From NCBI GenBank assembly GCA_028826165.1, contig JAPDFW010000124.1, positions 97,392-161,391 of the forward strand: a stretch of 64,000 nt of DNA, written 5' to 3'. This DNA is from Anaeramoeba ignava BMAN (lineage: Eukaryota > Protista > Anaeramoebae). Under the pieces are notes generated by a model. The model was not told the DNA's origin, made no database searches, and saw nothing but the letters and a program-made list of their open reading frames with translations. This document shows positions 44,546 to 63,328 of this stretch, in pieces. The position numbers were made by a program, and so were the translations under genes. The stretch's first letter is position 1. The number at the start of each line of letters is the position of its first letter.

Positions 44546-46147
44546 TTAAATAAAATAAGTCTCAAGTTCATCAACAACCCAGGAATTATAAGAACCAGAT
44601 AAATAACTTCTGGATTCAGTTGTTCCATAATAAATTCCATTCGGGAGACAAAATGTAATACCAAAATTTGAATATCCGGATTGTAAACTAGAATCCAAAA
44701 AAAAATCACAATTCAAAAAGCCTTTCTTGCCGCCAAAATAGGGACCATATTTCGACAAACGATAATATATTGCATATTTTTCTTGATCTTGCTGGATTCT
44801 AAATTTTTCTGGCTTTCTATCTCCTTTATCATTTCTTAATGAGAAAATAAATGCATTTTGATCTTGAATGAAATCATAATCTTGATTTTCATAAATTCCA
44901 CTCCATTTTGATTTATCATTTGTCCATCCAACTTGAGTAAAACCTCCAAAAATAAAATTATCTTCTGTTTTGATAATAACTAATGTTTTTCCTTTCCCAT
45001 CAACTGCTTTATGCCAATTTTGAGAAGAAAATCCATCTCTTTTTGCTGAAAATCCTTTTTTCATTTTAGAAAAAAAATCATTATCATTTATCCATTCTTG
45101 TAATTTCTTAACATATTCAATATCTTTAATAATTTCTGAGTCTGCAAAAATCTTTTGTAATTGTTCAAATTCTTTTCGAAAAAGATGAAAAGTTGGTTTC
45201 ATTTTAGCAACTTTTTTCTTCCATTTCTCTTTTATTTCCTTTTTCATTTTTTGATTTTCCTTCTCTTTGTTTTCAATTTTCTTATCTTTTTTTTTATCTT
45301 GAATTTCAAAAATAGTTCTTTCAAAAGGAATTAAAAAAGAATTTGGAAGAAAAATATCAAATTGTTTTAATTTATCAAAATCTTGTTTTGAAATTGAATC
45401 TTTATCAAATAATGAAAAAAAAGAATGAAATAATCTTTTCTTTGCATTCATTTTGTGTTTATATTTCTTTAATTTTAATGATTTAACTCTTTTTTTAATC
45501 CAATTATTTAAAAATTGAAAAAAATCAAATTGAAAAATTTCTTTTTTTTCTTGTTTAAATTGAATAAATTTGATAATTTCTTCTTTAGTTAAATTGAATA
45601 AATTCTCATTATTTTGAATTTGGGAAAAATTTTGATTTATTAATTCAAAACATTTTATTTCAATTTCATTTGAATTTAAATTTCGATTTTGGAATAAAAA
45701 TTGGAAAAAATTTGAATAATTAATTGAATTTAAAATTTTTTTTTGAATAATTTCTTTCAATAAATTTAATTTAAAATAAATTGAAATTTCTAATAATTGA
45801 ATAAGATTTTCTTGATTCTCAAAAGAAATATTTCCATAATAAATATAACTCAAAATTGATTCCATTTCTTTTTTATTAAATTGATTTAAAGAAATAGAAA
45901 GAGATTCTTGCCTTAATGATTCATTAAAAAAAGGAGATCTTGAAGATAAAATTGATTTATGAACTTTAATTTCAAAAGGATTTGATTTATTCTCAACAAA
46001 AATTGAAAAATCTTTAAATGAATTTCCATTTAAAAGGTTTGAATAATCTTTAATTAAATTTTTTGTTACTTTTTTTTCTAAATTTTTCATTTCATTTTCA
46101 TTTTGATTTTGATTTGCATTTTCAATTTGGTTATTATTATTATCCAT
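44546..46147 (-). CDS. BTB/POZ-(BACK-like)-coiled coil-TLDc protein, intronless, 533 aa
   Basis: BTB: FKDFSIFV...IKVHKSILSSRSPFF...ILSYIYYG. TLDc: RDGFSSQNWHKAVDGKGKTLVIIKT, IFGGFT, AFIFSL, GPYFG, VDELETY. Confidence 0.9.
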   Translation of the reverse strand: MDNNNNQIENANQNQNENEMKNLEKKVTKNLIKDYSNLLNGNSFKDFSIFVENKSNPFEIKVHKSILSSRSPFFNESLRQESLSISLNQFNKKEMESILSYIYYGNISFENQENLIQLLEISIYFKLNLLKEIIQKKILNSINYSNFFQFLFQNRNLNSNEIEIKCFELINQNFSQIQNNENLFNLTKEEIIKFIQFKQEKKEIFQFDFFQFLNNWIKKRVKSLKLKKYKHKMNAKKRLFHSFFSLFDKDSISKQDFDKLKQFDIFLPNSFLIPFERTIFEIQDKKKDKKIENKEKENQKMKKEIKEKWKKKVAKMKPTFHLFRKEFEQLQKIFADSEIIKDIEYVKKLQEWINDNDFFSKMKKGFSAKRDGFSSQNWHKAVDGKGKTLVIIKTEDNFIFGGFTQVGWTNDKSKWSGIYENQDYDFIQDQNAFIFSLRNDKGDRKPEKFRIQQDQEKYAIYYRLSKYGPYFGGKKGFLNCDFFLDSSLQSGYSNFGITFCLPNGIYYGTTESRSYLSGSYNSWVVDELETYFI

Positions 46148-46231: not shown

Positions 46232-46675
46232 AAAAAATTAAAAAATTTAAATTAAGAATAATCAATAATTAGTTTTGAAATTAATTTTATTTTATATATT
46301 TTATTAATATTTATTTATTTAAAATAATATAAAACTTAATTTAAAAATAAAATAAAATTAATAAAATATTTTAATTAATTTATTTCAAAATTTAAATTAA
46401 GAATAATCAATAATTAGATTTGAAATTAATTTATTTTTTATATTTTATTAATATTTATTTATTTAAAATAATATAAAGTTATTCCCAAAAATTAAATAAA
46501 ATAAATAAAATATTTTAATTAATTTATTTCAAAATTTAAATCAAGAATAATCAATAATTAGTTTTGAAATTAATTTTATTTTATATATTTTATTAATATT
46601 TATTTATTTAAAATAATATAAAGTTATTCCCAAAAATAAAATAAAATTAATAAAATATTTTAAATTAAAAAATTT
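46232..46675. repeat. 144-145-bp tandem array C, block 2 (3 copies) between the divergent BTB-TLDc and YgeW starts
   Basis: The anchor TCAATAATTAG occurs at 46262, 46407 and 46551. Same sequence and orientation as 43655-44535. Confidence 0.93.
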
Positions 46676-46715: not shown

Positions 46716-49700
46716 ATGACTGAAAAAGATAAATTTATTGAAAAAGCAAAAGAGAATATTGAAAAATTAAAACAATTAAAAACAGAAATTCATGGAACTG
46801 ATTTTTTAAGAACATGGGATCATACAAAAAATGATTTAGAAGCAGTAGTTTATGTAGCACAAGCACTTGAGAATATGATTAAAGCAAACATTTCATGCCA
46901 AGTTTTTAAGGGAGGTTTAGCAATTAGCAATTTCCGTAAATTAAAATTTTCTAATTGAAATTTTTTAATTGAATCTTTTAATTGAAATTTTTTAATTGAA
47001 TTTTCTAATTGAATTTTTTAATTAGGTGATCAAAGTACAAGAACAAGATTCTCTTATTCAAGTGCTGCTAATTTAGTTGGTCTCGCAAATAGTGAAATTG
47101 ATGAATCAAAATCTCAAGTTGCTCATGGTGTAATTAATCTTAATAAATTTTGTTTTTGAATTTTAAAATTGTTTTTTGTTTTGTTTTTGTTTTTGTTTTT
47201 GTTTTTAGGAAACTGTTAGAGAAACTGCAAATATGATTTCTTTTTTTGCTGAATTTTATGGAATTAGAGATGATATATTTCTTGTAAGAAAAATCATCAA
47301 TAAAATTTAAATTCAAAATATAATTTAAATCCAAAAATATAAATTAAATCAAAATATAATTTAAATTCAAAATATAATTTAAATCCAAAAATATAATTTA
47401 AATCAAAAATATAATTTAAATTCAAAAATATAATTTAAATTCAAAAATATAATTTAAATCAAAAATATAATTTAAATTCAAAAATATAATTTAAATCCAA
47501 AATATAATTTAAATCAAAAATATAATTTAAATTCAAAAATATAATTTAAATCCAAAAATATAATTTAAATCCAAAAATATAATTTAAATCAAAAATATAA
47601 TTTAAATCAAAAATATAATTTAAATCCAAAATATAATTTTTAAATCAAAATATAATTTAAATCCAAAAATATAATTTAAATCCAAAATATAATTAAATCA
47701 AAACACAATTTAAATCCAAAATATAATTTAATTCAAATTTAAAGGGAGAAGGACACAAATTCCAAAAAGAAGTTTCTGATGCTGTTGCTGATGGATTTAA
47801 ACAAGGAGTTCTTAATTCAAAACCACCAATTATTAATTTACAATGTGATGAAGATCATCCAACTCAATCTTTATCAGATTTAATTCATATTGCTCAATAT
47901 TTTGGAGGTTTAGAGAATTTAAAAGGAAAAAAGATTGCAATGACATGGGTAAATTATAATTTCTAAATCAAAAATATAATTTCAAATCAAAAATATTTAA
48001 ATCAAAAATATAATTTAAATCAAAATATAATTTAAATCAAAATATAATTTAAATCAAAATATAATTTAAATCCAAAATAATAAATTAAATCAAAATATAA
48101 ATTAAATCCAAAATATAAATTTAAATCCAAACATAATTTAATTCAAAATATAATTTAAATCCAAAAATATAAATTAAATCAAAAATATAATTTAAATCAA
48201 AAATACAATTTAAAACAAAAATATAATTTAAATCCAAAATATAATTTAAATCCAAAAATATAAATTAAATCAAAATCTAATTTAAATTAAAAATATAATT
48301 TAAATTAAAAATATAATTTAAATCCAAAATATAATTTAAATCCAAAATATAATTTAAATCCAAAAATATAATTTAAATCAAAAATATAAATTAAATCAAA
48401 ATATAATTTAATTCAAAAATATAATTCAAATCAAAAATATAATTTAAATCAAAAATATAATTTAATTCAAAATCAAAAAAGGCATTTTCTCCATCATATG
48501 GAAAACCTTTATCTGTTCCTCAAGCTATAATTGCACTTATGACAAGATTTGGAATGGATGTTAGATTAGCTCATCCTGAAGGATATGATTTAATTCCAGA
48601 AATTGTTGATTTAGCAAAAAAAAATGCAGAAGAAAATGGAGGAAAATTTACACAATTTAATAACATGGAAGATGCATTTAAAGATGCTGATATTGTTTAT
48701 CCAAAAGTAAATTAAATATTAAATAATAAATAATATTAAATAATAAATATTAATTAATAAATAAATTAAATATTAAATATTAAATAATAAATAAATTAAA
48801 TATTAAATATTAAATAATAAATAAATTAAATATTAAATATTAAATATTAAATATTAAATATTAAATAAATTAAATATTAAATATTAAATAAATTAAATAT
48901 TAAATATTAAATATTAAATATTAATATTAAATAATAAATAAATTAAATATTAAATATTAAATAATAAATAAATTAAATATTAAATATTAAATATTAAATA
49001 TTAAATATTAAATAAATTAAATATTAAATATTAAATATTAAATATTATTTATAAATATTATTTAGTCTTGGGCTCCTTTTGTTGTTATGCAAGAGAGAAC
49101 TAAATTATTAAAACAAGGAAATGCTGTTGCTGATCAATTAAAACAACTTGAAAAAAAATGTATCGAAAAGAACAAAGAATTTATTGTAAATAATAATTTT
49201 ATATTTTTCTTTTAAATTTTAAATTAAACAAAAACAAATACTTAATCCAAAAATTAATTAAAATTTCTTTTATTTTTTTTAGAATTGGTAAAAAAATATT
49301 TTTTAATCAAATCAAATTAAATCAAAATTTATATTCTATTTAAAAAAATATTTTTTAAGGGAATGTGATGAAGAGAAAATGAAATTAACTAAAGATGGAA
49401 AAGCTCTTTATATGCATTGTTTACCTGGTAATTTAAAAATTGAATAATAATAAATACAAATAATTTATTTTAATAAAAATCAATTTAAAAATCAATTTAA
49501 ATTTTTAAGCTGATATTACTGGAGTAAGTTGTGAACATGGCGAAGTTTCTGCACAAGTTTTTGACAAATATAGAATTGACACTTATAAAGAAGCGGGTAA
49601 ATAAAAATAAAAATTAAAATAAAAATAAAAATAAAAATAAAAATTAAAATTAAAATTAAAATTAAAATTAAAATTAAAATTAAAATTAACATACAATTAA

Positions 49701-49880
49701 AATCTAAAATTAAAATTAAAATTCAAATTAAATTAAAATTAAAATTAAAATTAATAAATAAATAAAGGTCATAAAATGTATGTGATTTCTGCAATGATGT
49801 TATTGACTAAATTTAAAGATGTTCCTGAATTACTTACTCAATTAATTAAAGAAAATACACCAAGAAAAAAAGCAGATTAA
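46716..49880 (+). CDS. ygeW: YgeW-type (knotted) carbamoyltransferase, ATCase/OTCase superfamily, 406 aa, 10 exons
   Basis: Exons 46716-46935, 47026-47129, 47209-47283, 47745-47948, 48482-48706, 49066-49185, 49283-49287, 49360-49427, 49510-49596 and 49768-49880 total 1221 nt, all GT-AG. The protein has [74 protein letters not shown] and [15 protein letters not shown], which I recognise as YgeW blocks. Confidence 0.92.
47300..48480. repeat. ~20-bp intronic minisatellite (AAAATATAATTTAAATCC)n in YgeW introns 3 and 4
   Basis: Visible on both sides of exon 47745-47948. Confidence 0.9.
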
Positions 49881-51583: not shown

Positions 51584-54500
51584 ATGAACTTTGATGATGA
51601 TGATGATTGGAGAAAGCTATCAAAAAAAAAACCATTTCATCACAATAAAAATACTCAAAACAACAGAATGAACAATAAAAGATATTACAATCAACCCATA
51701 AACCATAATTCACAAAATCAATATCTTAATAATTCAAATTCAGAAAAACATAAAGAAAGAAAAAAAGAAGAAACAAATCTAATAAATGAAATAACTTCCT
51801 TTTTTGATAAACAAAAAAAAGAAGAATTAAACTCTTTCCTTTCTGAAATTTTTTGTTCTTTTTTCCTTCATAATGAAAAATCTCCAAATCTTGTTTCTCT
51901 TGATACTTTTATTGATTTCTTTTGTTTAATTCTTAATCAAATTCCTCAACAATTTCAAATCTTAAAAGAAAAAAAAATTTATGAAAAATTTAATTTACTC
52001 AAAAAAAGTAAATCAATTCCTTCTCAAATTCTTCTTGCAAAATTGAAAGAATTAGATTCTATTTATATTTTTGATAAAATAAATCAAGATATTTCAAAAC
52101 CAATTATTTATGAAATTGGAACTAATTCTCAAAATCAAGATTTTATTAACATTTTCAATTTTTATTCTTATGATAAAAATCATCCTTTTACTTATAAAAC
52201 TATTGAAAGAGAAAATGTTTTAGAAAGAAATAAGAAAAAGAAAATAATAATCAAAAAGAAAATTATTCCAATTCTTCATATTCAAGAATCAAAAGAAAAT
52301 TTATTAAAAGAAGAATGTTTAAGAATTTTAGAAATTGCTGAAACTCAACAAAATTTTGAAAGATCTGATTTTTATAATACATTTCTATTTCGTAATAAAT
52401 CTCATTCAATTCAAAAAATGTTTGATTCAAATAAAATGATGAATGTTGCTAAATCAGAAAAAAGTTTAATTTGGAAAACATTACTTTCTATTTTCAGAAA
52501 TATTTTTAATAGCAAAATTATTTATCAAGAATTTAAAGAATTTATCTATTTTTTGATTTTTTCCTCAATCCTTAATTTTATTCAAAAAGAAGAAAAGAAA
52601 ACAATTTCTTTCAAATTTTATCAAATTTTAGAATCAAGTTTACAAAAATATTCAAATTATATTTGTAAAATTTTTCAAAAACAATCAACAAATATTGGAA
52701 GTAGATGGGAATTAATTAAAAATTTAAAAAATGAAATGAAAAAAATTCAATTTTTCAAACCAATTCCAATAAATATTGAAGAATTTAAACAAGAATATAA
52801 TGTTTATTTCAAAAATTGGAAAGAAAATATCAATAATCAAATTCAAACAATTCAAAAATTCAATTATATTTTACAAAATCAAAATTCAAATTTATCTCTT
52901 TCAAAACAAGAAGAAAATAAAACAAAATATATTATTGATACTTTCAAATTTCAAAAAAATAATTTCACATTAAAAGAATTATTAAATGAACTTAATCAAT
53001 TTAAATCTTTTCTTGATAATTTAAATTCAAATCAAAATCAAAATAAAATTTCAAATTATTTTATTGCAAATCTTTTAATGATAATTCCAACTCCAAAAAT
53101 AGAAAAACCTTATTCATTTTATCAAATTCAAAATTCAATTAAAAATGAAGAAACAAGAAATGAATTATTTTCTCTTATTAATCATTTTCAAAATTTTTTG
53201 AAAAATCTTATTGAAATTGAAATTGGATCACCTTCTTTTGGATTAGCTGTTTTCAATAATTTAGCAATTTTAATTAGAATTATTCAAATTTATGATGAAA
53301 TTTTTGAAACACATATTGATCAAAGAATTGATAAATTTAAAATTCATTCTGAACCTTTTTATCAATTTTATTATCAAGGAAATTTATTCTTAAATATTTT
53401 AGAAGCAAATAAAATTTCAGAACTTAAACAATTTTATGATAAATTTGGAACAAAACAAAATGGATTTGGATTTAGAGTAACAAACAATTTATCTTCATCA
53501 GATATTCAAGAAGAAATTCAATTTCTTACTTCATTTGTTGAAAATGAATTTTCAAATGATGAATTAATTTCAAAATTTCAAATTATTGTTTCTCCTGAAA
53601 TTAAAAAAGATGATTTTATTCAAAAAGAGAAATTTTATGAAAAACATTTTAAAAAAGGAATTTATTCTTTTCTTAAAACACAAATTGAAGAAATTGAACA
53701 AAAATGGGAAAAAGAAGAAAAATATTTAAATTTAGGATTATTTTATGAAACTCAAATTTATGAAGGAGAACAAGGAGGAAATACATTGAAAACTTGTGAA
53801 TATTATTTAAAATATTTTGAACAAAACAATCAATCAATTTCAGATCAATCAATTTTTGAAAAAGCTAAAAACAATTTAAAAAAAAAAGGAAATTTTGATG
53901 AAAACAAAAAACTTTACACAATTCAAGAAAGTTTGAAAAATTTCCAACAAATTCTTCCAAAAAATGAAATTGAAAAATCAAAAATGAATTAGATTTTCTT
54001 AAAATTTCTGTTTTTCATCTTCATAATTCTTCATCATATTCACATAAATACTATTAATTCATATCAAAAATGTATTAAGAAAAGTGAAAATAAAGAAGAA
54101 AAAATTATTTTTAGTGCATTTATTTCTGATTTATCAATGGAAAGAAAAGATTGGAAAACATCATTAAATTCCTTAAATTATTTACTTGAAGAATCATTTT
54201 CAAATGAAGAATTAATTAAAAAATATCAAGATCTTTTTATTTATAATAGAAAAATATGTTTAATTGAATTAGGAAAATTTGATGAAATTATTAAAGAAAT
54301 CAAAGATTCAAATTCAAATCCTTATTATTTATTTCTTAAATTATGGGCATATTTCCAAAAGAAACAATTTAATGAAGCTATTAAAATTGCTAATATTTTA
54401 AGAAATAAATTTAATGAAAAACCATTTAATTCAAATAAATTAAAAGAATTAGAAAATAAAATGAAATTATTTGAAGCTCAAAAACAATTTAATTCCAAAA

Positions 54501-57500
54501 ATTATTCAAAATCATATGAATTATTTTCACAAGTTTATTCAGAATATCCAGATTCTTCAATTCTTAAAATTTTTCTTTTCAAATTAAAAAGATTACAAAA
54601 TTCAAATGAAATTAAATTAGATTTTGAATTGAAAAGAAATTTCCAAAAATTAATTATTTATGAATTATTTTGTCAACAAAAAGGAAAATATTCTATTCAA
54701 ATTGATTCTAAAGATTATTATGTTCAAAATTTAATAAATTTTGAAGAAGAAATTAAAAAAAGAAATGGATTAAAAATTTATAAAATTATTTGTGATTCAA
54801 TATTTCAAACTTCAAAATTTGTTTTTAAAATTGTTGAAAGAAAATATCAACAAAATCAATCAAGAAAAATTATTGAAAGTATAAAATCATTATCTCAACC
54901 TAATTTATCTCCTTATATTTCAAATCTTAAACCCAATGAAAATTTTATTATTGATTCAAAAAATCATAATCCACCAATAGGAAGAATGAAAGAAAATAGT
55001 TTTTCTTTTCAATTTACAAAATATCAAAATTTTGAAATTAATCCTTTTTTCAATCCATTTATTATTTCAAATCAAAATCAAAATCAAAATGAAAATCAAA
55101 TATTAATTAAAGAAGAAAAACAAGATTATTTTTCTGAAAGTATTTCTGAATCAATCAAAATTATAAATGAAAAAAGAAGAGAATTTGAAGAAAATGAAAA
55201 TGAAAAATATATTCATGAAAATGAAATAATTTCAATTATTCAATCAAAAAGTAGTTTAGAATTAATTGAAGAATTTTGTTTAATAAGAACTAAACCTTTA
55301 ATTCAAAGTTCATTATTAATTGAATATTTATTATCAGATATTTCATTATTAGAAAAAGAATCATTTCGTAATTTTGCATTAATTACATTTTTTGAAAAAG
55401 ATTATTTATTTAAACAAATTCAAATAGAATCAGAAATTATCAAACAAATTGATAAATTATTAGAATATTTCAAAAATTTTATTGAAAGTTCTCCTCATTC
55501 AATTCAACCTCTTCTCAAATTTTTTTATTACTTTTTAAAAATTTGTTTCAATGAATATTTATTCTTTTCAAACAACAAAAACAAAAACAAAAACAAAAAC
55601 AATAACAATTCACAAAATGAAAATGAAAATGAAAATGAAAATGAAAATGAAAATGAAAATGAAATTGAAAATGAAAATGAAATTGAAATTGAAAAAGAAA
55701 TGAAAAAAATTGAAAAAGAAATTGAAAAAGAAATGCAAAAAATTGAAAAAGAAATGAAAGAAACAAAAACCGAAAATGAAAGAATGGAATTGAAAATGAA
55801 TCTCAACTTTTTTTATTCTCTTTTAGTTTTATTATATCAACATTATCAAACTAATCCAGAAAAATTAAAAGAATCACAAATTGAAAAATGTTTACTTTCT
55901 AAAATGAGAATTTCTTTCTTTGGATTTAAAAATGAAAATCAACAAGAAATATTTCTTATTCAACAAAAATTTGATTTCTTTTATTTTTCAATTTTAAAAA
56001 TTATTTTTGAAAAGATTGAAAAGAAAAATATTATTTCTATTTTGAAAAATATTGAAATTATTTCTGAAAATGAAGAAAAAATTGAAAATTGTTTATTATC
56101 AAAAAATTTCCCATTTATCAATTTAAAAACAAAAGAAAATAATTTATATTTAATCAATATTTTAACAGGAGAATTATTCAAAAATGGAACATCAAATATT
56201 AAAAAATTAGATTCTTATATTTCAGATCCAATTTATAAACAAATTTTTGGAAATAATCCTTTATTTCAAATTCAAAAAAAAATTATTCAACAAAATTCTA
56301 AATTTTCAAATCCTATTTTTCTTACAACATTTGAAGATTCAAAAAATCAAAAACCATTTTTTCAAATTATTGGAAATGAAAACAATATTTTACTTTTCAA
56401 ACATCAAATTTCAATTCAAAATCAAAATCAAAATCAAAATCAAAATCAAAATCAAAATGAAATAGAAAAGAAAATACTTAATTTCTTTCCAAATAATAGA
56501 AAAGAAATTCCATTAATTTTTCAAAATAAGAATTATTTACATTGGATAAATGAAGAAAATTCCAAAATTTATATTCAAAAAATTCCAAAAGAAATTCAAT
56601 TATCAAATGATTTTGTTAAAATTTCTAAATGGATTTCAGAAACTCAACCAGAATATTTAATTCAAAAAAATTCTGAAAATAAATATGAATTAATTGAAAT
56701 GAAAAATTCATTAAAATTAATAAATTTACTTGAACAAGAAAATATGAATGAAAAACAAAAAAAATCAATTCAATTTCTTACAAAAGAAATTCAATCAAAA
56801 GAAATTCAAAATTTTAATAATTTATCTTTTCAAAAAATATTAAAAATTAAAGATTCAAATTCAAAATATTTTGGATTTGAAAAATTTGATTCAATTCTTA
56901 TTTGGCAAGGAAAATCAAAAATTAATCAAAATCAAAATCAAAATCAAAATCCAAAATCAAAATCAAATTCAAAATCAAAATCAAAATCAAAATCAAAATC
57001 AAAATGAAAATGAAAATGAAAATGAAAAATCAAATAATTATTTTCCACTTAAAATTGAATTTCCAAGATATTTTCATCAATCAAAAATTATTTCATTTAA
57101 TTTTAATGAAGAAAAAAATGAATATTTATTTTCACAAGATTCTCGATTTCATTTAATTTCTTTAAAAGAATCAACAAAAGAATATGAAATTTTAAACAAA
57201 AATTTATTAATTCAAAGAAAATTTGATATGTTTTTATTAATGAAAAATGAAGAAAATAATGAAATGAAAATTATTATTCCAGTTAGATCACTTTCAGAAG
57301 ATTTTAAATTATTTTCATGGAATACTTCAAATGAAAATCCAAATACAAATTATCAATGTTTTATAATGAAAATTGATGAAAATGGAAAAATATTAACAAA
57401 TAATGAAGAAGAGAATTTTTTTATTTCATTTTTATATTTAGAACATAAATTTTATGAAGAATCTATTAAATATCTTTTAATGATTCAACCAATTTTACCT

Positions 57501-60500
57501 CTTTCTAAATTATCATTTGAAATTGGATTTTGGATTTTATCTCAATTTACAAATCAAAATTTAAAATTTCGAGATTGCCATCCATATGCTTCTTCAATTA
57601 GAATTATTTGTGCTGAAATTCTTTATTCAAATTATTTCACAAAAATTCAATCTAAAAATTTAAAAGAAGATTTTCATAATATTTTTCATAATGAAATGAT
57701 TTATAGTTGGAGAACTGAATTTCAAAATTTTGAAAGTTTCCAAACATCACTTGCTATTAATTTAAATATTTATCTTAATTTTGGAAATTTATTTATTTCA
57801 CCTAAAATTGATTATTTCTATCATTTTCAAAGATCTAAATTTTTTGAAAATATTTTCCAAAAATTTAAATTTCAAGAAAATATTTATTATTTATTAGATT
57901 CAATATTTAAAAATACTTTTGAAAATTATGATCAAAATTTACCATTTCCTCAAACTTTTGAATTTATTTATTTTGAATCTTATCTTTCTTATCCTCAAAA
58001 TATTCCAAATCAATTATTATTTTCCAAAACAGAATTAGTTTCTAAAATTCATCAAAATTCTAATAATGAACTTTCAAAAATTTTTAAGAAAGTGAAAAAA
58101 AGTAAACTTATTCCCGAATTAAAAATTAATATTAAAGAAGATTTTTCAAAATTAATTTCAGAATTTCCAATATATTTTCGATCTATTCTTCAAAGATTAT
58201 GTGATCCAAATTCAGGAATTAAAGAAAATGAAGAATTATTTTTAAATATCAAAGTTTGGATGAAATTTCTTAATTTAAAAACAAATTTTAATCTTAAATT
58301 AAAAAATATTATTTTAGATTATTGGGAAAAAAGAAAAAATTCAAATTCTCAAAAATTTAAAAATCCTTTTTTAACTCAAGAAGAAAAAAATGAAAAACAA
58401 AAACAAAAAGAAGAATCAAAATCAAAATGGAATGATCAAAAGCAAAATGGAATGATTTCTCTTCATCTTTTCAACAAAAAATAGATAAATTATTGAAAGG
58501 ATTTAATCAAATGAATTATTTTGATAAATTTAATGAAGAAGAAAATTTATTAAATCAAATGATAAAAAAAATATCTCAAAATAATAATTTTCAAGAAAAT
58601 AATCAATTATCAAATATTCAAAATTTTACTTATTTGGAAATAAAAGATATTATTTTCCAAAAGAAAATTTTAAAAGAAAAACAAAAAGAATTAAATGAAA
58701 TTAAATATGAAACAATTCAAGAAAAACAATATGAAACAATTCAAGAAAAACAAAAAGAATTAAATAAAATTGAAAATGAAATAATTCAAAAATTTGATAA
58801 ATTATTTGAAAGAAAAACTTTTGAATCAAAAATTTCCAAAATTTGAAATGAATATTTCTCAACAAAATTTTGATCAACTCAAACCAAATCAAAAATTTAT
58901 TCAAAAATCTCAAAAACAATTTTTAGAAGATGAAGAAAAAGGAAATGAAATAAATCAAAAAGAAAAATATATTCTCAAATCAAAAGAAGAAAATTCAATT
59001 CAATTATTAGAAGATTTTTTGAATAAAAAAAAACAAAAAATTGAAAAAAAATCAAACAAATTTGAGAAAGAAAATAAAGAATATTCTTAATAAAAAAGGA
59101 AATGAAAACCAGAAAATTAGAGAATTGAAAATAATTGGAAATCAAATTGAAGAATATGAAATTGAAGATATATTGAATTTATTTGCACATTTTGAAAAAG
59201 AACCATTTCAATTTTTAAATCCAAATTTAAAAGAAGAAGATATTAAAAAATTATTTGGATTTATGATAATTTTCCTTCAAAATGAAATTTTAAATCAAAA
59301 AATTATAAGAACATTAAATTTATGTGAAAATTTCAAAAAATATTCACAAAATTGGAATGAAGAAAAAAAAAATGAAGAAATCAAACAAATTGAGAAAATG
59401 ATTAAAGCAAAAAGAGATTTAAAAGCTTTAGAAAAATATATTCCTCAAATTTTAATATTTGAATATCAAAATAATATTATTTTAAGAGAAAAACAAATTC
59501 AAATTCTTTCAAAAATTTGTGAATTTTATGAAAATCAAAAATTAAATTCAAATTCAAAAGTTTAAATGAAGAAAAAAAAATAATTATTCAATTATTAATG
59601 GGAGAAGGAAAAACAAAAGTAATTGGACCAATTTTAGCTTTTCTTCAAAGTAAAATATTTCAAGATAAAAAACCATTATTAATATTCTTAACACCAGAAT
59701 CTTTAATTGAAACTAATTCACAAGATATGAAAATTACATCAAAATATTCTTTTAATCAAAAACTTAATCTTCTTCAATTTTCAAGAAATGAAGAAAATAT
59801 TGAAAAAGAAAATTTGAAAAATATTCTTGAAATGTTTAAAAAATGCAAAGAAAATTATGAATTTATAATTTCAACAGCTGAATCAATTCAATGTTTAGAA
59901 TTAGAATATATTTCTTTAATTGATGAATTTGAAAAATGGGAAGAATATAAAAAAAATCAAAATCAAAATCAAAATCAAATTTCAAAAACAAAAAAACAAA
60001 AAGAAGAAGAAGAAAAAAAACAAGAAATTCCTGAAAAAATCCAAATTTTAAATCAAATTTTAGAAATAATCAAAAAAGAATCAATTTTAACTATTGATGA
60101 AGTTGATAATGTTCTTTCTGTTTTTAGAAATGTAAATTTTACAACAGGAGAAAAAGATTTAAAATTTAAAGATTATCAAATTGAAATTATTAAAACAATT
60201 TACAAAAAATATGGAAATGAATTAAAAGAAGAAAAAAATACAATATTAACTTCAAAAGAAATGAAACAAAAACAAAAAATAATTGTTGAAAATATTTTGG
60301 AAATTTTGATTCCTGAACAAGTTGATAATCAAACTTATGAAAAATATTTTGATTATTTAATGAATGAAATATCTCTTTCCAAAAAAGATTTTGAAAAACA
60401 AAAAGATCCAAATTTATCTGAAAAACTTTCCTGGAGTAGATATATTCTTAATGATTTATTACCACAAGTTATTGATAAACAACCAAATGAACATTTTGGA

Positions 60501-63328
60501 ATTTCAAAAGAAAAATGGAAATTTGAAGAAAAAAATTCAAAACAAATTCATGTTGCAATTCCTTATAAAGCAGCTAATAAACCAATAGAAGGATCAATTT
60601 TCGCAAATATATTTGAAACTCTTTGTAAAACAATTCATTATTATTATTATATTGGATTACCTTCAAATAAAATTCAACATTTCCTTTCATTTTTACAAAG
60701 AGAATACAAACAATTAGCTTCTGAAAATTCAAATAAACATTCAAAATTAAAAAAACAAATTCAAAAAGAATTTAAAATTGATATTTCTGAAGTTAGAATT
60801 GATCAATTATCAAAACCAAAACTTGAAGAAATTCAAAAAATTGTGAATAAAAATTTATTTAATCCCAAAGTTTATGCTTATTCACATTTTCATCAATATA
60901 TTAAAGAAGAAATTTTAGAACAATTTGGATGTGAATCAAGACAACTTAATAGTACATCATCAGATCTTTGTTCTTTTTTTCAATTAATTGTTGGATATTC
61001 AGGAACTTCACAAACCAAAGAAAGAGATCAAAGTCTTGGAAGAGTTGTTAATAGTCTTCTTCAAATTGAAGATAAAAATATATTTATTATTCAACCAAAA
61101 AAAACACCTTTACAACTTTTTGAAGAAATTTTTAAAAAGAATGAAAACAATTTTCCATTTCAAACTTTTATTGATGTTGGAGCATATTTCAAAGGATTTA
61201 CAAATACAGAAATTGCCAAAGAAATGATGATATTTTTTTCAAAACATAAAAAAGAAAAAGAAAAAGAAGAAAAAGAAACAGAAACAAAAACAGAAATCAA
61301 AATCAAAGGAATTTTATTTTTTGATGAAAAAGATTTTCTTTCAATAATCAAAGAAAATGAAGAAGAAAATGATTTTAATTTGAAATTTCAAGTAATAAAA
61401 ATTGGAAGAAGTGATCCAAAAACAATTCAAACAATAACACAACTTAATCAAGAAGAAATATTTACTTTTTATGATCAAAGTCATACTATTGGAGCAGATA
61501 TTCAACAACCATTATTTTGTGAAGCTCTTTTATCAATTTCTGAAAAAACACAAACAGTTCAACTTCTTCAAGGAGCAATGAGAATGAGAAAATTAAATTA
61601 TGGAACACAAAAAATATCATTTATTATTCCACAACCAACATCTATTTTTATAAAATCAACTCTTTCTTTATCAGAAGAAGAAAACAACAAAAACAATAAT
61701 AACAATAATAACAATAACAAAAACAACAAAAATAATAACAATAACAAAAACAACAAAAATAATAAAAATAATGAAAATGATCCTAAAGTTATCAAATTCA
61801 AAATGAAAAAATTAACAGAAAAATTTGAAAAAATTCAAACAAAAATTTCAAAAATTGAAAAAGAAATTAAATCTTTTGAAAATTCAAATCAAAAAGAAAA
61901 AGAAATTAAATCTTTTGAAAATTCAAATAAAAAAAAAAAGAAATTAATTAAAAAAAAGAATAAAACAGAAAAAAAAATTGATAAATTAAAACCCAAATCA
62001 ATAGATATAATTTCATTTACTTTTATTAATGATTTGAAACAATTTTCTCTTATTTCAATTCATGAAATTATTCAAGAAATTAATACAATTATTAAAAGTG
62101 AAATTTTTGAATGGATTTTAGAAATTAAAGAATTAGAAAAGAAAAGAAAATTATTTAAATTATTTGGAAAAGAAGGAGAAATATTTATCAAACAAAATAT
62201 TCAAGATTATTGGAAGCAATATTCAAAAAAAACTGAAATGGAAGATTCTAAAGAAATTATCAAAAATTTATTCAATTCAAAAAACAACAAATTGAAAATA
62301 TATTTAAACAAATTACAAATGAAATTTCAGAATTTAAATCAAAAGGAAATCAAATCAAAAAAAGAATTTTGGATAATTTAGAAAAAATTGAAATTAATTT
62401 TGAAAATTCTTTTCAATCTTTACCTGAAAAATTTTATTCATCACAAAAAGATGATAATTCAAATCAAGAAACTCATTTAAAATTAGAAATGTCAATTCAT
62501 GAACAAGAACAACAATTATTGATAATTGGAAATAAATTTGAAACAAATAAAGAAAATAAAATTAATATTCCTTTTATTATTCAAGAAAATATCAATTCAA
62601 AAATTAAAACAAATTCATATTTCAAATTAATTCAAAAATTCCAGAAATGATTTATCCAAAAATGAATAAAAAAATGAAATGAAAATTTCTTAAAGAATTT
62701 ATATGTTACTCAAAATTTTATCAATTCAATTAATCAAAAAGAAATATTAAATTTTAGATTAAGATTTTTTACAAGAATTTTATTAATAATTGAAGCAAAA
62801 ACAAAATCAAAAATTTGGATATTTTTAACTCAACAAGAAATTGAAGATATTATGGAATTTATTTTAGATTTGAAAATGAGAAATATCAAGAAAGATAACA
62901 ATAATAACAATAATAACAATAATAGTAATAATAATAACAATAATAATAATAATGATAACAAAAATTCTTTTATTTTAATGAGTTTAGATGGAAATATTCT
63001 TTGTAGATTTGGATCAGAATTCAAAGATATTACAACAAATATTATTCAAAAGAAACATATTCCAAATCATCATCAACATTTCACTTTAATTAATGAAATT
63101 CGAAAAACTCTTTTTATTTTTGGATTATTAAAATTTCATTGGGGAATTTTTGAAATTGGAAGAAATAAAAATAAAGAAATAAGAAATGATATTGAACAAG
63201 AATTGAATAATTTTTATCAACTTCAAGAAAATTTTAAAGATAATTTTTCACAAAATCTTTCTACTTTTAAAAAGAAAATTCATTTTAATTTGGAACAAAT
63301 TTCCAAAAATAATTCCAAAAAAGATTAA
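51584..63328 (+). CDS. Giant (~3900 aa if repaired) intronless DUF3638/DUF3645 SF2-helicase-like P-loop protein with a TPR-like segment; ~10 frame disruptions (pseudogene or unpolished assembly)
   Basis: Consecutive ORFs overlap in shifted frames without needing introns. Motifs in order: IFEYQNNIILREKQ, QLLMGEGKTKVI (Walker A), LTIDEVD (Walker B), AIPYKAANKP..GSIF (DUF3645-like), GYSGT, FIDVGA, FYDQSHTIGADI, LLQGAMRMRKL. Confidence 0.72.

Follow-up and report, generated by a model that had tools for sequence, protein, structure and literature searches.

In Escherichia coli the transcarbamylase YgeW, together with phosphate, cleaves one ureido group of 2,3-diureidopropionate to give carbamoyl phosphate, from which carbamate kinase then makes ATP (2025, bioRxiv 10.1101/2025.04.24.650524). 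Its hallmarks are a proline-rich loop, extended 120s and 240s loops and extra terminal helices, and eight residues (Q98, D124, Q160, S200, K203, K270, D334 and E344) are proposed to line its second-substrate site (PMC4581275). SsnA has been described as the most reliable marker of the reductive urate pathway, and the reductase of that pathway in C. difficile is UacX, a homolog of dihydropyrimidine dehydrogenase (DPD). According to a 2025 review, only selected anaerobic bacteria break down urate without oxygen; on the age of the pathway it leans towards recent adaptation to the gut over an ancient origin but leaves the question open (PMC12990295). Eukaryotic members of the YgeW family are on record: the Trichomonas vaginalis protein XP_001326968 (YTCase) was mentioned in a 2015 review (PMC4581275), and BMAN_g12991 and the A. 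flamelloides genes BUSSELTON_g15620 and g21053 have been listed as lateral gene transfers (LGT) with YgeW best hits, in a paper that says nothing of purines, urate or carbamoyl transfer in its text (PMC11550330, Suppl. Data 5D). Here we analyse the ygeW gene of the protist Anaeramoeba ignava BMAN, within a stretch of 64,000 nucleotides of contig JAPDFW010000124.1 (hereafter the window, to which coordinates without a contig label refer). It is near certain, judged from sequence, that the encoded protein is a knotted YgeW carbamoyltransferase of 406 amino acids; that it serves a eukaryotic, YgeX-less and dispersed version of the reductive 2,8-dioxopurine route, in which carbamoyl phosphate and ATP are formed, is the reading that we favour and consider probable.

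Profile searches, structure matches and trees were run exon by exon, nine exons being searchable (exon 7 is too short); all trees came from quick searches, with supports given as Shimodaira-Hasegawa-like approximate likelihood ratio test (SH-aLRT) values. Among transcarbamylase models, each of the nine exons had YgeW (NF005538/TIGR03316) as its best match, and together they tiled the YgeW profile in order and almost gap-free from position 3 to 395 of 396, which excludes chance as the source of the match. Exon scores sum to approximately 491 bits for NF005538 and 462 bits for TIGR03316 (curated cut-offs 453 and 500), sums over pieces not being equivalent to whole-protein scores. Exon 4 gave 99.8 bits with YgeW and 26 with ornithine carbamoyltransferase (OTCase), and exon 5 gave 134.7 bits with YgeW, 51.4 with the acetylornithine enzyme (AOTCase), 42.4 with OTCase and 16.9 with the aspartate enzyme (ATCase); both exons matched the YgeW structures 3Q98 (E. 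coli) and 2YFK (E. faecalis) far above any OTCase. All three carbamoyl-phosphate motifs (SxRT, HPxQ, HxLP) are kept, in the forms STRT, HPTQ and HCLP that a preliminary description of this DNA had called intact and that were located in exons 2, 4 and 8, and 8/8 of the second-substrate residues are identical to those of E. coli YgeW. At the sequence level, the proline-rich loop, the extended 120s and 240s loops and the extra terminal helices match profile or PDB segments near gap-free. The comparison with OTCase, ATCase and AOTCase proposed in that description placed exon 1 inside the YgeW clade with support 100 and, with the profile matches, motifs and site residues, confirms its identification of the protein as YgeW. 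An ornithine, aspartate or acetylornithine carbamoyltransferase identity was rejected on the exon scores and the exon 1 placement.

The gene runs on the + strand from an ATG at 46716 to the end of a stop codon at 49880 (Table 1). Ten exons sum to 1221 nt, or 406 codons and a stop, with no internal stop; the nine introns (72–533 nt) are all bounded by GT and AG (9/9) and have a GC content of 0.6–14%, compared with 20–36% in exons. These figures, with the ordered profile tiling, bear out the complete, nine-intron protein of 406 amino acids predicted earlier, and three of the YgeW-specific blocks cited at that time are contiguous only after joining across introns 4, 5 and 8. GT and AG each occur just twice in the interval 49186-49359, and omission of exon 7 shifts the frame, so that an exon of 5 nt is the sole way to preserve it. 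The N-terminus encoded by exon 1 starts with acidic residues and is without an obvious organelle presequence. In one sequencing run of unstated kind, 0.32 of the words of the gene were present, close to the exon-only expectation of 0.31–0.36; this is suggestive only, a hint of splicing and no proof. A single 18-bp minisatellite fills introns 3 and 4, flanking exon 4 (47299-48465).

Table 1. Features of the ygeW gene in the window, and positions of two pyridoxal phosphate (PLP) enzyme genes elsewhere in the A. ignava genome.
Feature	Position	Strand	Description	Profile match
ygeW gene	46716..49880	+	10 exons, 406 aa	
Exon 1	46716..46935	+	73 codons + 1 nt; YgeW-specific extra N-terminal helix	NF005538 54.5 bits, profile 3-67
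Intron 1	46936..47025	+	GT-AG, phase 1, 13/27-bp repeat	
Exon 2	47026..47129	+	Carbamoyl-phosphate motif STRT at 47034-47045; Q98 equivalent	profile 69-102
Intron 2	47130..47208	+	GT-AG, phase 0	
Exon 3	47209..47283	+	D124 equivalent	profile 103-127
Intron 3	47284..47744	+	GT-AG, phase 0, 18-bp AT minisatellite	
Exon 4	47745..47948	+	Extended 120s loop; Q160 equivalent; HPTQ at 47856-47867	profile 128-195
Intron 4	47949..48481	+	GT-AG, phase 0, 18-bp minisatellite as in intron 3	
Exon 5	48482..48706	+	Proline-rich knot loop (48482-48523); S200, K203, K270 equivalents	profile 196-270
Intron 5	48707..49065	+	GT-AG, phase 0, 0.6% GC	
Exon 6	49066..49185	+	Extended 240s loop with 2-residue insertion	profile 271-307
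Intron 6	49186..49282	+	GT-AG, phase 0	
Exon 7	49283..49287	+	5-nt micro-exon; encodes N and two bases of conserved W	
Intron 7	49288..49359	+	GT-AG, phase 2; retention ends protein at residue 318	
Exon 8	49360..49427	+	HCLP at 49415-49426	profile 311-332
Intron 8	49428..49509	+	GT-AG, phase 1	
Exon 9	49510..49596	+	D334, E344 equivalents	profile 334-361
Intron 9	49597..49767	+	GT-AG, phase 1	
Exon 10	49768..49880	+	C-terminal helices and stop	profile 364-395
ThrC-like PLP enzyme gene	C104:910716-913400		Spliced	
490-aa PLP enzyme gene	C66:225539-228824		Spliced	

Identity to prokaryotic proteins of 61–66% is high, as would be expected of bacterial contamination, and a eukaryotic OTCase might in principle have been miscalled. 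Nevertheless, the gene has nine spliceosomal introns with host-type repeats and lies among BTB-TLDc, SRP14 and other host genes, while the true OTCase is a separate gene in the same genome (contig C71) and exon scores are two- to four-fold higher for YgeW; introns, profile tiling, motifs and site residues refute both ideas. The published model invites another doubt. BMAN_g12991 is almost certainly the gene at 46716-49880, and its published best-hit alignment ends at query position 318, the Trp that precedes an in-intron stop if intron 7 is retained. Were the gene truncated or decaying, with a product ending at residue 318, the alignment would stop exactly there; but frame, splice sites and conserved residues are all kept in exons 8–10 and alignments of the A. 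flamelloides orthologs reach residue 394, and decay is very unlikely. We infer instead that the published model was truncated by retention of intron 7 after the 5-nt exon. It seems to be without the last 88 residues, including HCLP (49283-49359), and the annotation likely needs correction.

A search for partner enzymes, as the preliminary description had proposed, succeeded in part: SsnA, a YgeY-family enzyme, a hydantoinase, carbamate kinase and xanthine dehydrogenase (XDH) are encoded in the A. ignava genome, and YgeX and YgfK were not found. SsnA exceeds both curated cut-offs (530 versus 444 bits and 501 versus 455.5 bits), and its gene forms one unbroken, intronless reading frame and is present in an A. 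ignava transcriptome set. The spliced YgeY gene, for which the YgeY family is the best match, is of a long type: its product shares 57% identity with a protein whose gene lies 8 kb from ygeW in a Holophagaceae metagenome-assembled genome (MAG), 55% with the YgeY part of a YgeW::YgeY fusion, and 32–39% with standard YgeY. Carbamate kinase is spliced, as is a hydantoinase/dihydropyrimidinase present in two near-identical copies (C69:211228-214431 and C53:33277-36514), approximately 30% identical to HyuA, which may serve pyrimidines; C53 (44.5 kb) may be a haplotig or a recent duplicate. Two eukaryote-type XDH genes (26–33% identical to ygeW-cluster enzymes) and a guanine deaminase-like gene are accompanied by two single-chain DPDs, DPD1 with a canonical uracil pocket and DPD2 with changes at positions matching pig S670, H673 and T737. 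DPD2 (C1:1546636-1548774), with its altered pocket and extra C-terminal 4Fe-4S motifs, is a candidate purine-ring reductase. Arginine deiminase and a beta-ureidopropionase-like gene (C64) are also present, uricase was not found in the genome search, and six xanthine/uracil permeases have been listed as LGT (PMC11550330). The pathway genes are unlinked, on contigs C125, C120, C55, C69/C53, C79, C104, C66, C1 and C86.

Candidates to replace YgeX emerged from 81 prokaryotic ygeW loci, related by descent and mostly from incomplete MAGs. YgeX was found in 55/81 loci and a ThrC-like and/or a 490-aa PLP enzyme in 10/81, with no co-occurrence; YgeX was absent assembly-wide from all seven genomes (7/7) whose cluster holds both PLP genes, and two genomes with just one of the two in the cluster do carry it. 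A. ignava has spliced orthologs of the ThrC-like (46% identity) and 490-aa (52–78% identity) enzymes, with the PLP lysine motif kept. Orthologs of both genes replace YgeX in ygeW clusters of Spirochaetota, Holophagaceae and Bacteroidota. On a marine Tara scaffold (L147:5208-12892) a YgeW::long-YgeY fusion adjoins a single-chain XDH, and another contig (L150:179-8298) carries in a row a ThrC-like gene, an SsnA::YgeW fusion, a single-chain flavoprotein of DPD architecture and an XDH; to judge from the single-chain layouts, the source organisms are probably eukaryotic. The pair of PLP enzymes and the DPD-type flavoprotein are likely stand-ins for YgeX and YgfK. Hydrogenosomal-looking presequences were seen on one XDH (L043:992-1111), the ThrC-like enzyme (L042:1962-2081) and Stygiella SsnA, and A. 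ignava YgeW, SsnA, YgeY and the 490-aa enzyme are without one; the urate route may be split between compartments.

In the proposed route, single-chain XDH would convert urate to 2,8-dioxopurine, the weakest step, with a molybdenum cofactor probably scavenged from prey. DPD2, likened by description to C. difficile UacX, may reduce 2,8-dioxopurine; SsnA and the hydantoinase would open the two rings, and YgeW and the long YgeY would remove the two ureido groups. Gene neighbourhoods suggest that the ThrC-like and/or the 490-aa PLP enzyme would deaminate diaminopropionate, giving pyruvate, in place of the diaminopropionate ammonia-lyase YgeX.

Several observations weigh against this route. YgeX had no candidate genome-wide with TIGR03528 or TIGR01747, by an exon-wise search that could miss a finely split gene; YgfK was not found in the genome search, nor are the genes clustered, the window neighbours of ygeW being unrelated host genes. 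The route would work like the gut-bacterial pathway, yet it falls outside the strict E. coli/C. sporogenes type. No XdhD/XdhAC-type urate reductase was found, both XDHs being ordinary eukaryote-type enzymes; the genome search did not find MoaC, and a published table has no molybdopterin synthesis protein in metamonads. Without a urate-reducing XDH ortholog and MoaC the first step is weak, and the cofactor for the two XDHs would have to come from food. Since arginine deiminase, OTCase and the beta-ureidopropionase-like gene are present, everyday functions account for the kinase (a complete arginine deiminase pathway) and for the hydantoinase and DPD1 (a full pyrimidine pathway), and these carry little weight; no such other function offers itself for SsnA, YgeY and YgeW. 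Two genomes carry both YgeX and the 490-aa enzyme, and the ygeW loci are neither independent of kinship nor mostly complete, which makes the exclusion between YgeX and the PLP pair a lead rather than a statistic. The purine catabolic route with ATP suggested in the preliminary description keeps support for its role and its partners, with a partner set other than that of E. coli, and carbamate kinase, its ATP step, is present but equally explained by arginine breakdown.

The clear pathway-specific orthologs are confined to the lower steps, and MoaC, XdhD and YgfK orthologs were not found, as they would be if YgeW, YgeY, SsnA and the PLP enzymes merely salvaged ring-opened intermediates or 2,8-dioxopurine from prey or bacteria, with no urate reduction by the protist itself. 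Retention of two XDH genes and a modified DPD, and the clustering of XDH and a DPD-type protein with such genes on two environmental contigs, make such salvage unlikely, though not negligible. YgeW might alternatively draw extra ATP from another ureido compound, such as beta-ureidopropionate or a citrulline-like molecule: its substrate was long unknown (PMC4581275), and DPD with dihydropyrimidinase would supply beta-ureidopropionate. However, the beta-ureidopropionase-like gene and OTCase already cover those compounds, the substrate site is the same as in E. coli YgeW, and SsnA and YgeY would lack an explanation; we regard this as improbable. That YgeW substitutes for a missing beta-ureidopropionase was rejected, a gene like it being present. 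The dispersed dioxopurine route thus remains the preferred account.

A prokaryotic ancestry of ygeW is supported. Its exons scored highest against a small prokaryotic subgroup (63–66% identity) to which Thermoplasmatota archaea and Aureabacteria belong and which shares the 2-residue insertion of exon 6, seen in 30/290 sequences. Exons 1 and 4 fell in a clade of 97–99% support with this subgroup and Planctomycetes-Verrucomicrobia-Chlamydiae (PVC), deltaproteobacterial and protist-like sequences; finer placement varied by exon and run, and exon 5 is too conserved to place. Lateral transfer is upheld in this respect, although a bacterial donor, as first suggested, is not, the closest named relatives including archaea. 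The archaeal YgeW genes (L079:9015-10217 and L155:10001-11212) are from uncultured organisms, one relative being named Thermoplasmatota, and are not part of a cluster; in the L079 genome SsnA and the 490-aa PLP enzyme are present and YgeX is missing. SsnA was found in eight anaerobic protists from four major lineages (both Anaeramoeba species, Stygiella, Pygsuia, Mastigella, Trimastix, Cantina and Ergobibamus), and seven of the eight group on a single branch (SH-aLRT 95) together with four unnamed sequences. One metagenome sample supplied both the best YgeW relative, which lies near a 491-aa PLP gene, and a sequence from the sister group of SsnA, which neighbours an 834-aa reductase on a contig of archaeal appearance; this hints that the two genes may have shared a donor lineage.

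Barthelona sp. PCE encodes an intronless YgeW amid eukaryotic genes; with the T. vaginalis protein and the LGT listing of the present gene, this contradicts the earlier statement that the family is purely prokaryotic. Named protists were absent from the best 120 matches to prokaryotic YgeW queries (word search), all prokaryote-like, so that protist YgeW is under-sampled. The pathway enzymes would have been gained from prokaryotes ahead of the divergence of A. ignava from A. flamelloides, and probably long before it, or have spread among anaerobic protists: a single old acquisition with losses and transfer between such protists both fit, and a recent transfer to Anaeramoeba only does not. Intron count and codon usage, from which an old transfer was previously read, do not date it, as SsnA is intronless yet groups with protists and the GC content at third codon positions of ygeW (0.10) is within the wide host range (0.08–0.44); intron number was rejected as a clock of transfer.

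Elsewhere in the window, a divergent BTB-TLDc gene occupies 44546-46147, and the short spacer between it and ygeW holds approximately three copies of a 144-bp unit (46242-46668). Six long same-strand open reading frames at 54137-63328, one with DUF3638, probably belong to one very large gene that short introns or frameshifts interrupt.

Some eukaryotes, then, may get ATP from purines, a candidate ATP source for anaerobic eukaryotes beside arginine breakdown. It is conceivable, though we stop short of calling it probable, that a complete reductive purine pathway is common to free-living anaerobic protists (Metamonada, Discoba, Amoebozoa, Obazoa, Stramenopiles), prokaryotic and possibly Thermoplasmatota-related in origin, yielding ATP from urate, with a repurposed DPD and an unrecognised PLP pair replacing YgfK and YgeX. 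If true, it would add a new energy route to those of eukaryotes and would point to an old sediment origin of the ‘gut’ pathway; marker enzymes in free-living sediment protists, with nearest kin in sediment archaea and bacteria, favour the ancient option. The two uncharacterised PLP enzymes are testable YgeX substitutes that would widen screens for urate-degrading microbes, and a testable function is offered for the orphan Trichomonas YgeW. Eukaryotic YgeW itself was already known, and this gene catalogued; the purine-pathway role seems unreported and the enzyme substitutions appear new, literature linking ygeW, SsnA or dioxopurine to protists having yielded nothing beyond the mentions in PMC4581275 and PMC11550330 in a search mostly outside subscription papers.

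The closest described protein is E. coli YgeW (YTCase), to which that of A. ignava is approximately 61% identical (summed over exons), with the motifs, proline-rich loop and eight proposed substrate residues in common; unlike it, the A. ignava gene is nuclear and unclustered, with nine introns and a 5-nt micro-exon, and its product has the 240s-loop insertion of the Thermoplasmatota/Aureabacteria subgroup. The Trichomonas protein, known here from its mention in PMC4581275 alone, and the Anaeramoeba LGT entries represent the same family in eukaryotes, but neither PMC4581275 nor PMC11550330 ties them to a purine pathway. With the reductive urate/2,8-dioxopurine pathway (Liu et al. 2025; Li et al. 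2025; PMC12990295) A. ignava shares SsnA, YgeW, YgeY-family, hydantoinase, kinase and XDH-family genes; it differs in being a eukaryotic host with dispersed genes, in which YgfK, YgeX and XdhD were not found, YgeY is of the long type, and the ThrC-like enzyme, the 490-aa PLP enzyme and the modified DPD are candidate stand-ins. The arginine deiminase pathway of metamonads follows the same logic, phosphorolysis of a ureido group followed by ATP formation through a carbamate kinase that the two routes probably share, but with another substrate and another transcarbamylase family, unknotted OTCase rather than knotted YgeW, and A. ignava has both.

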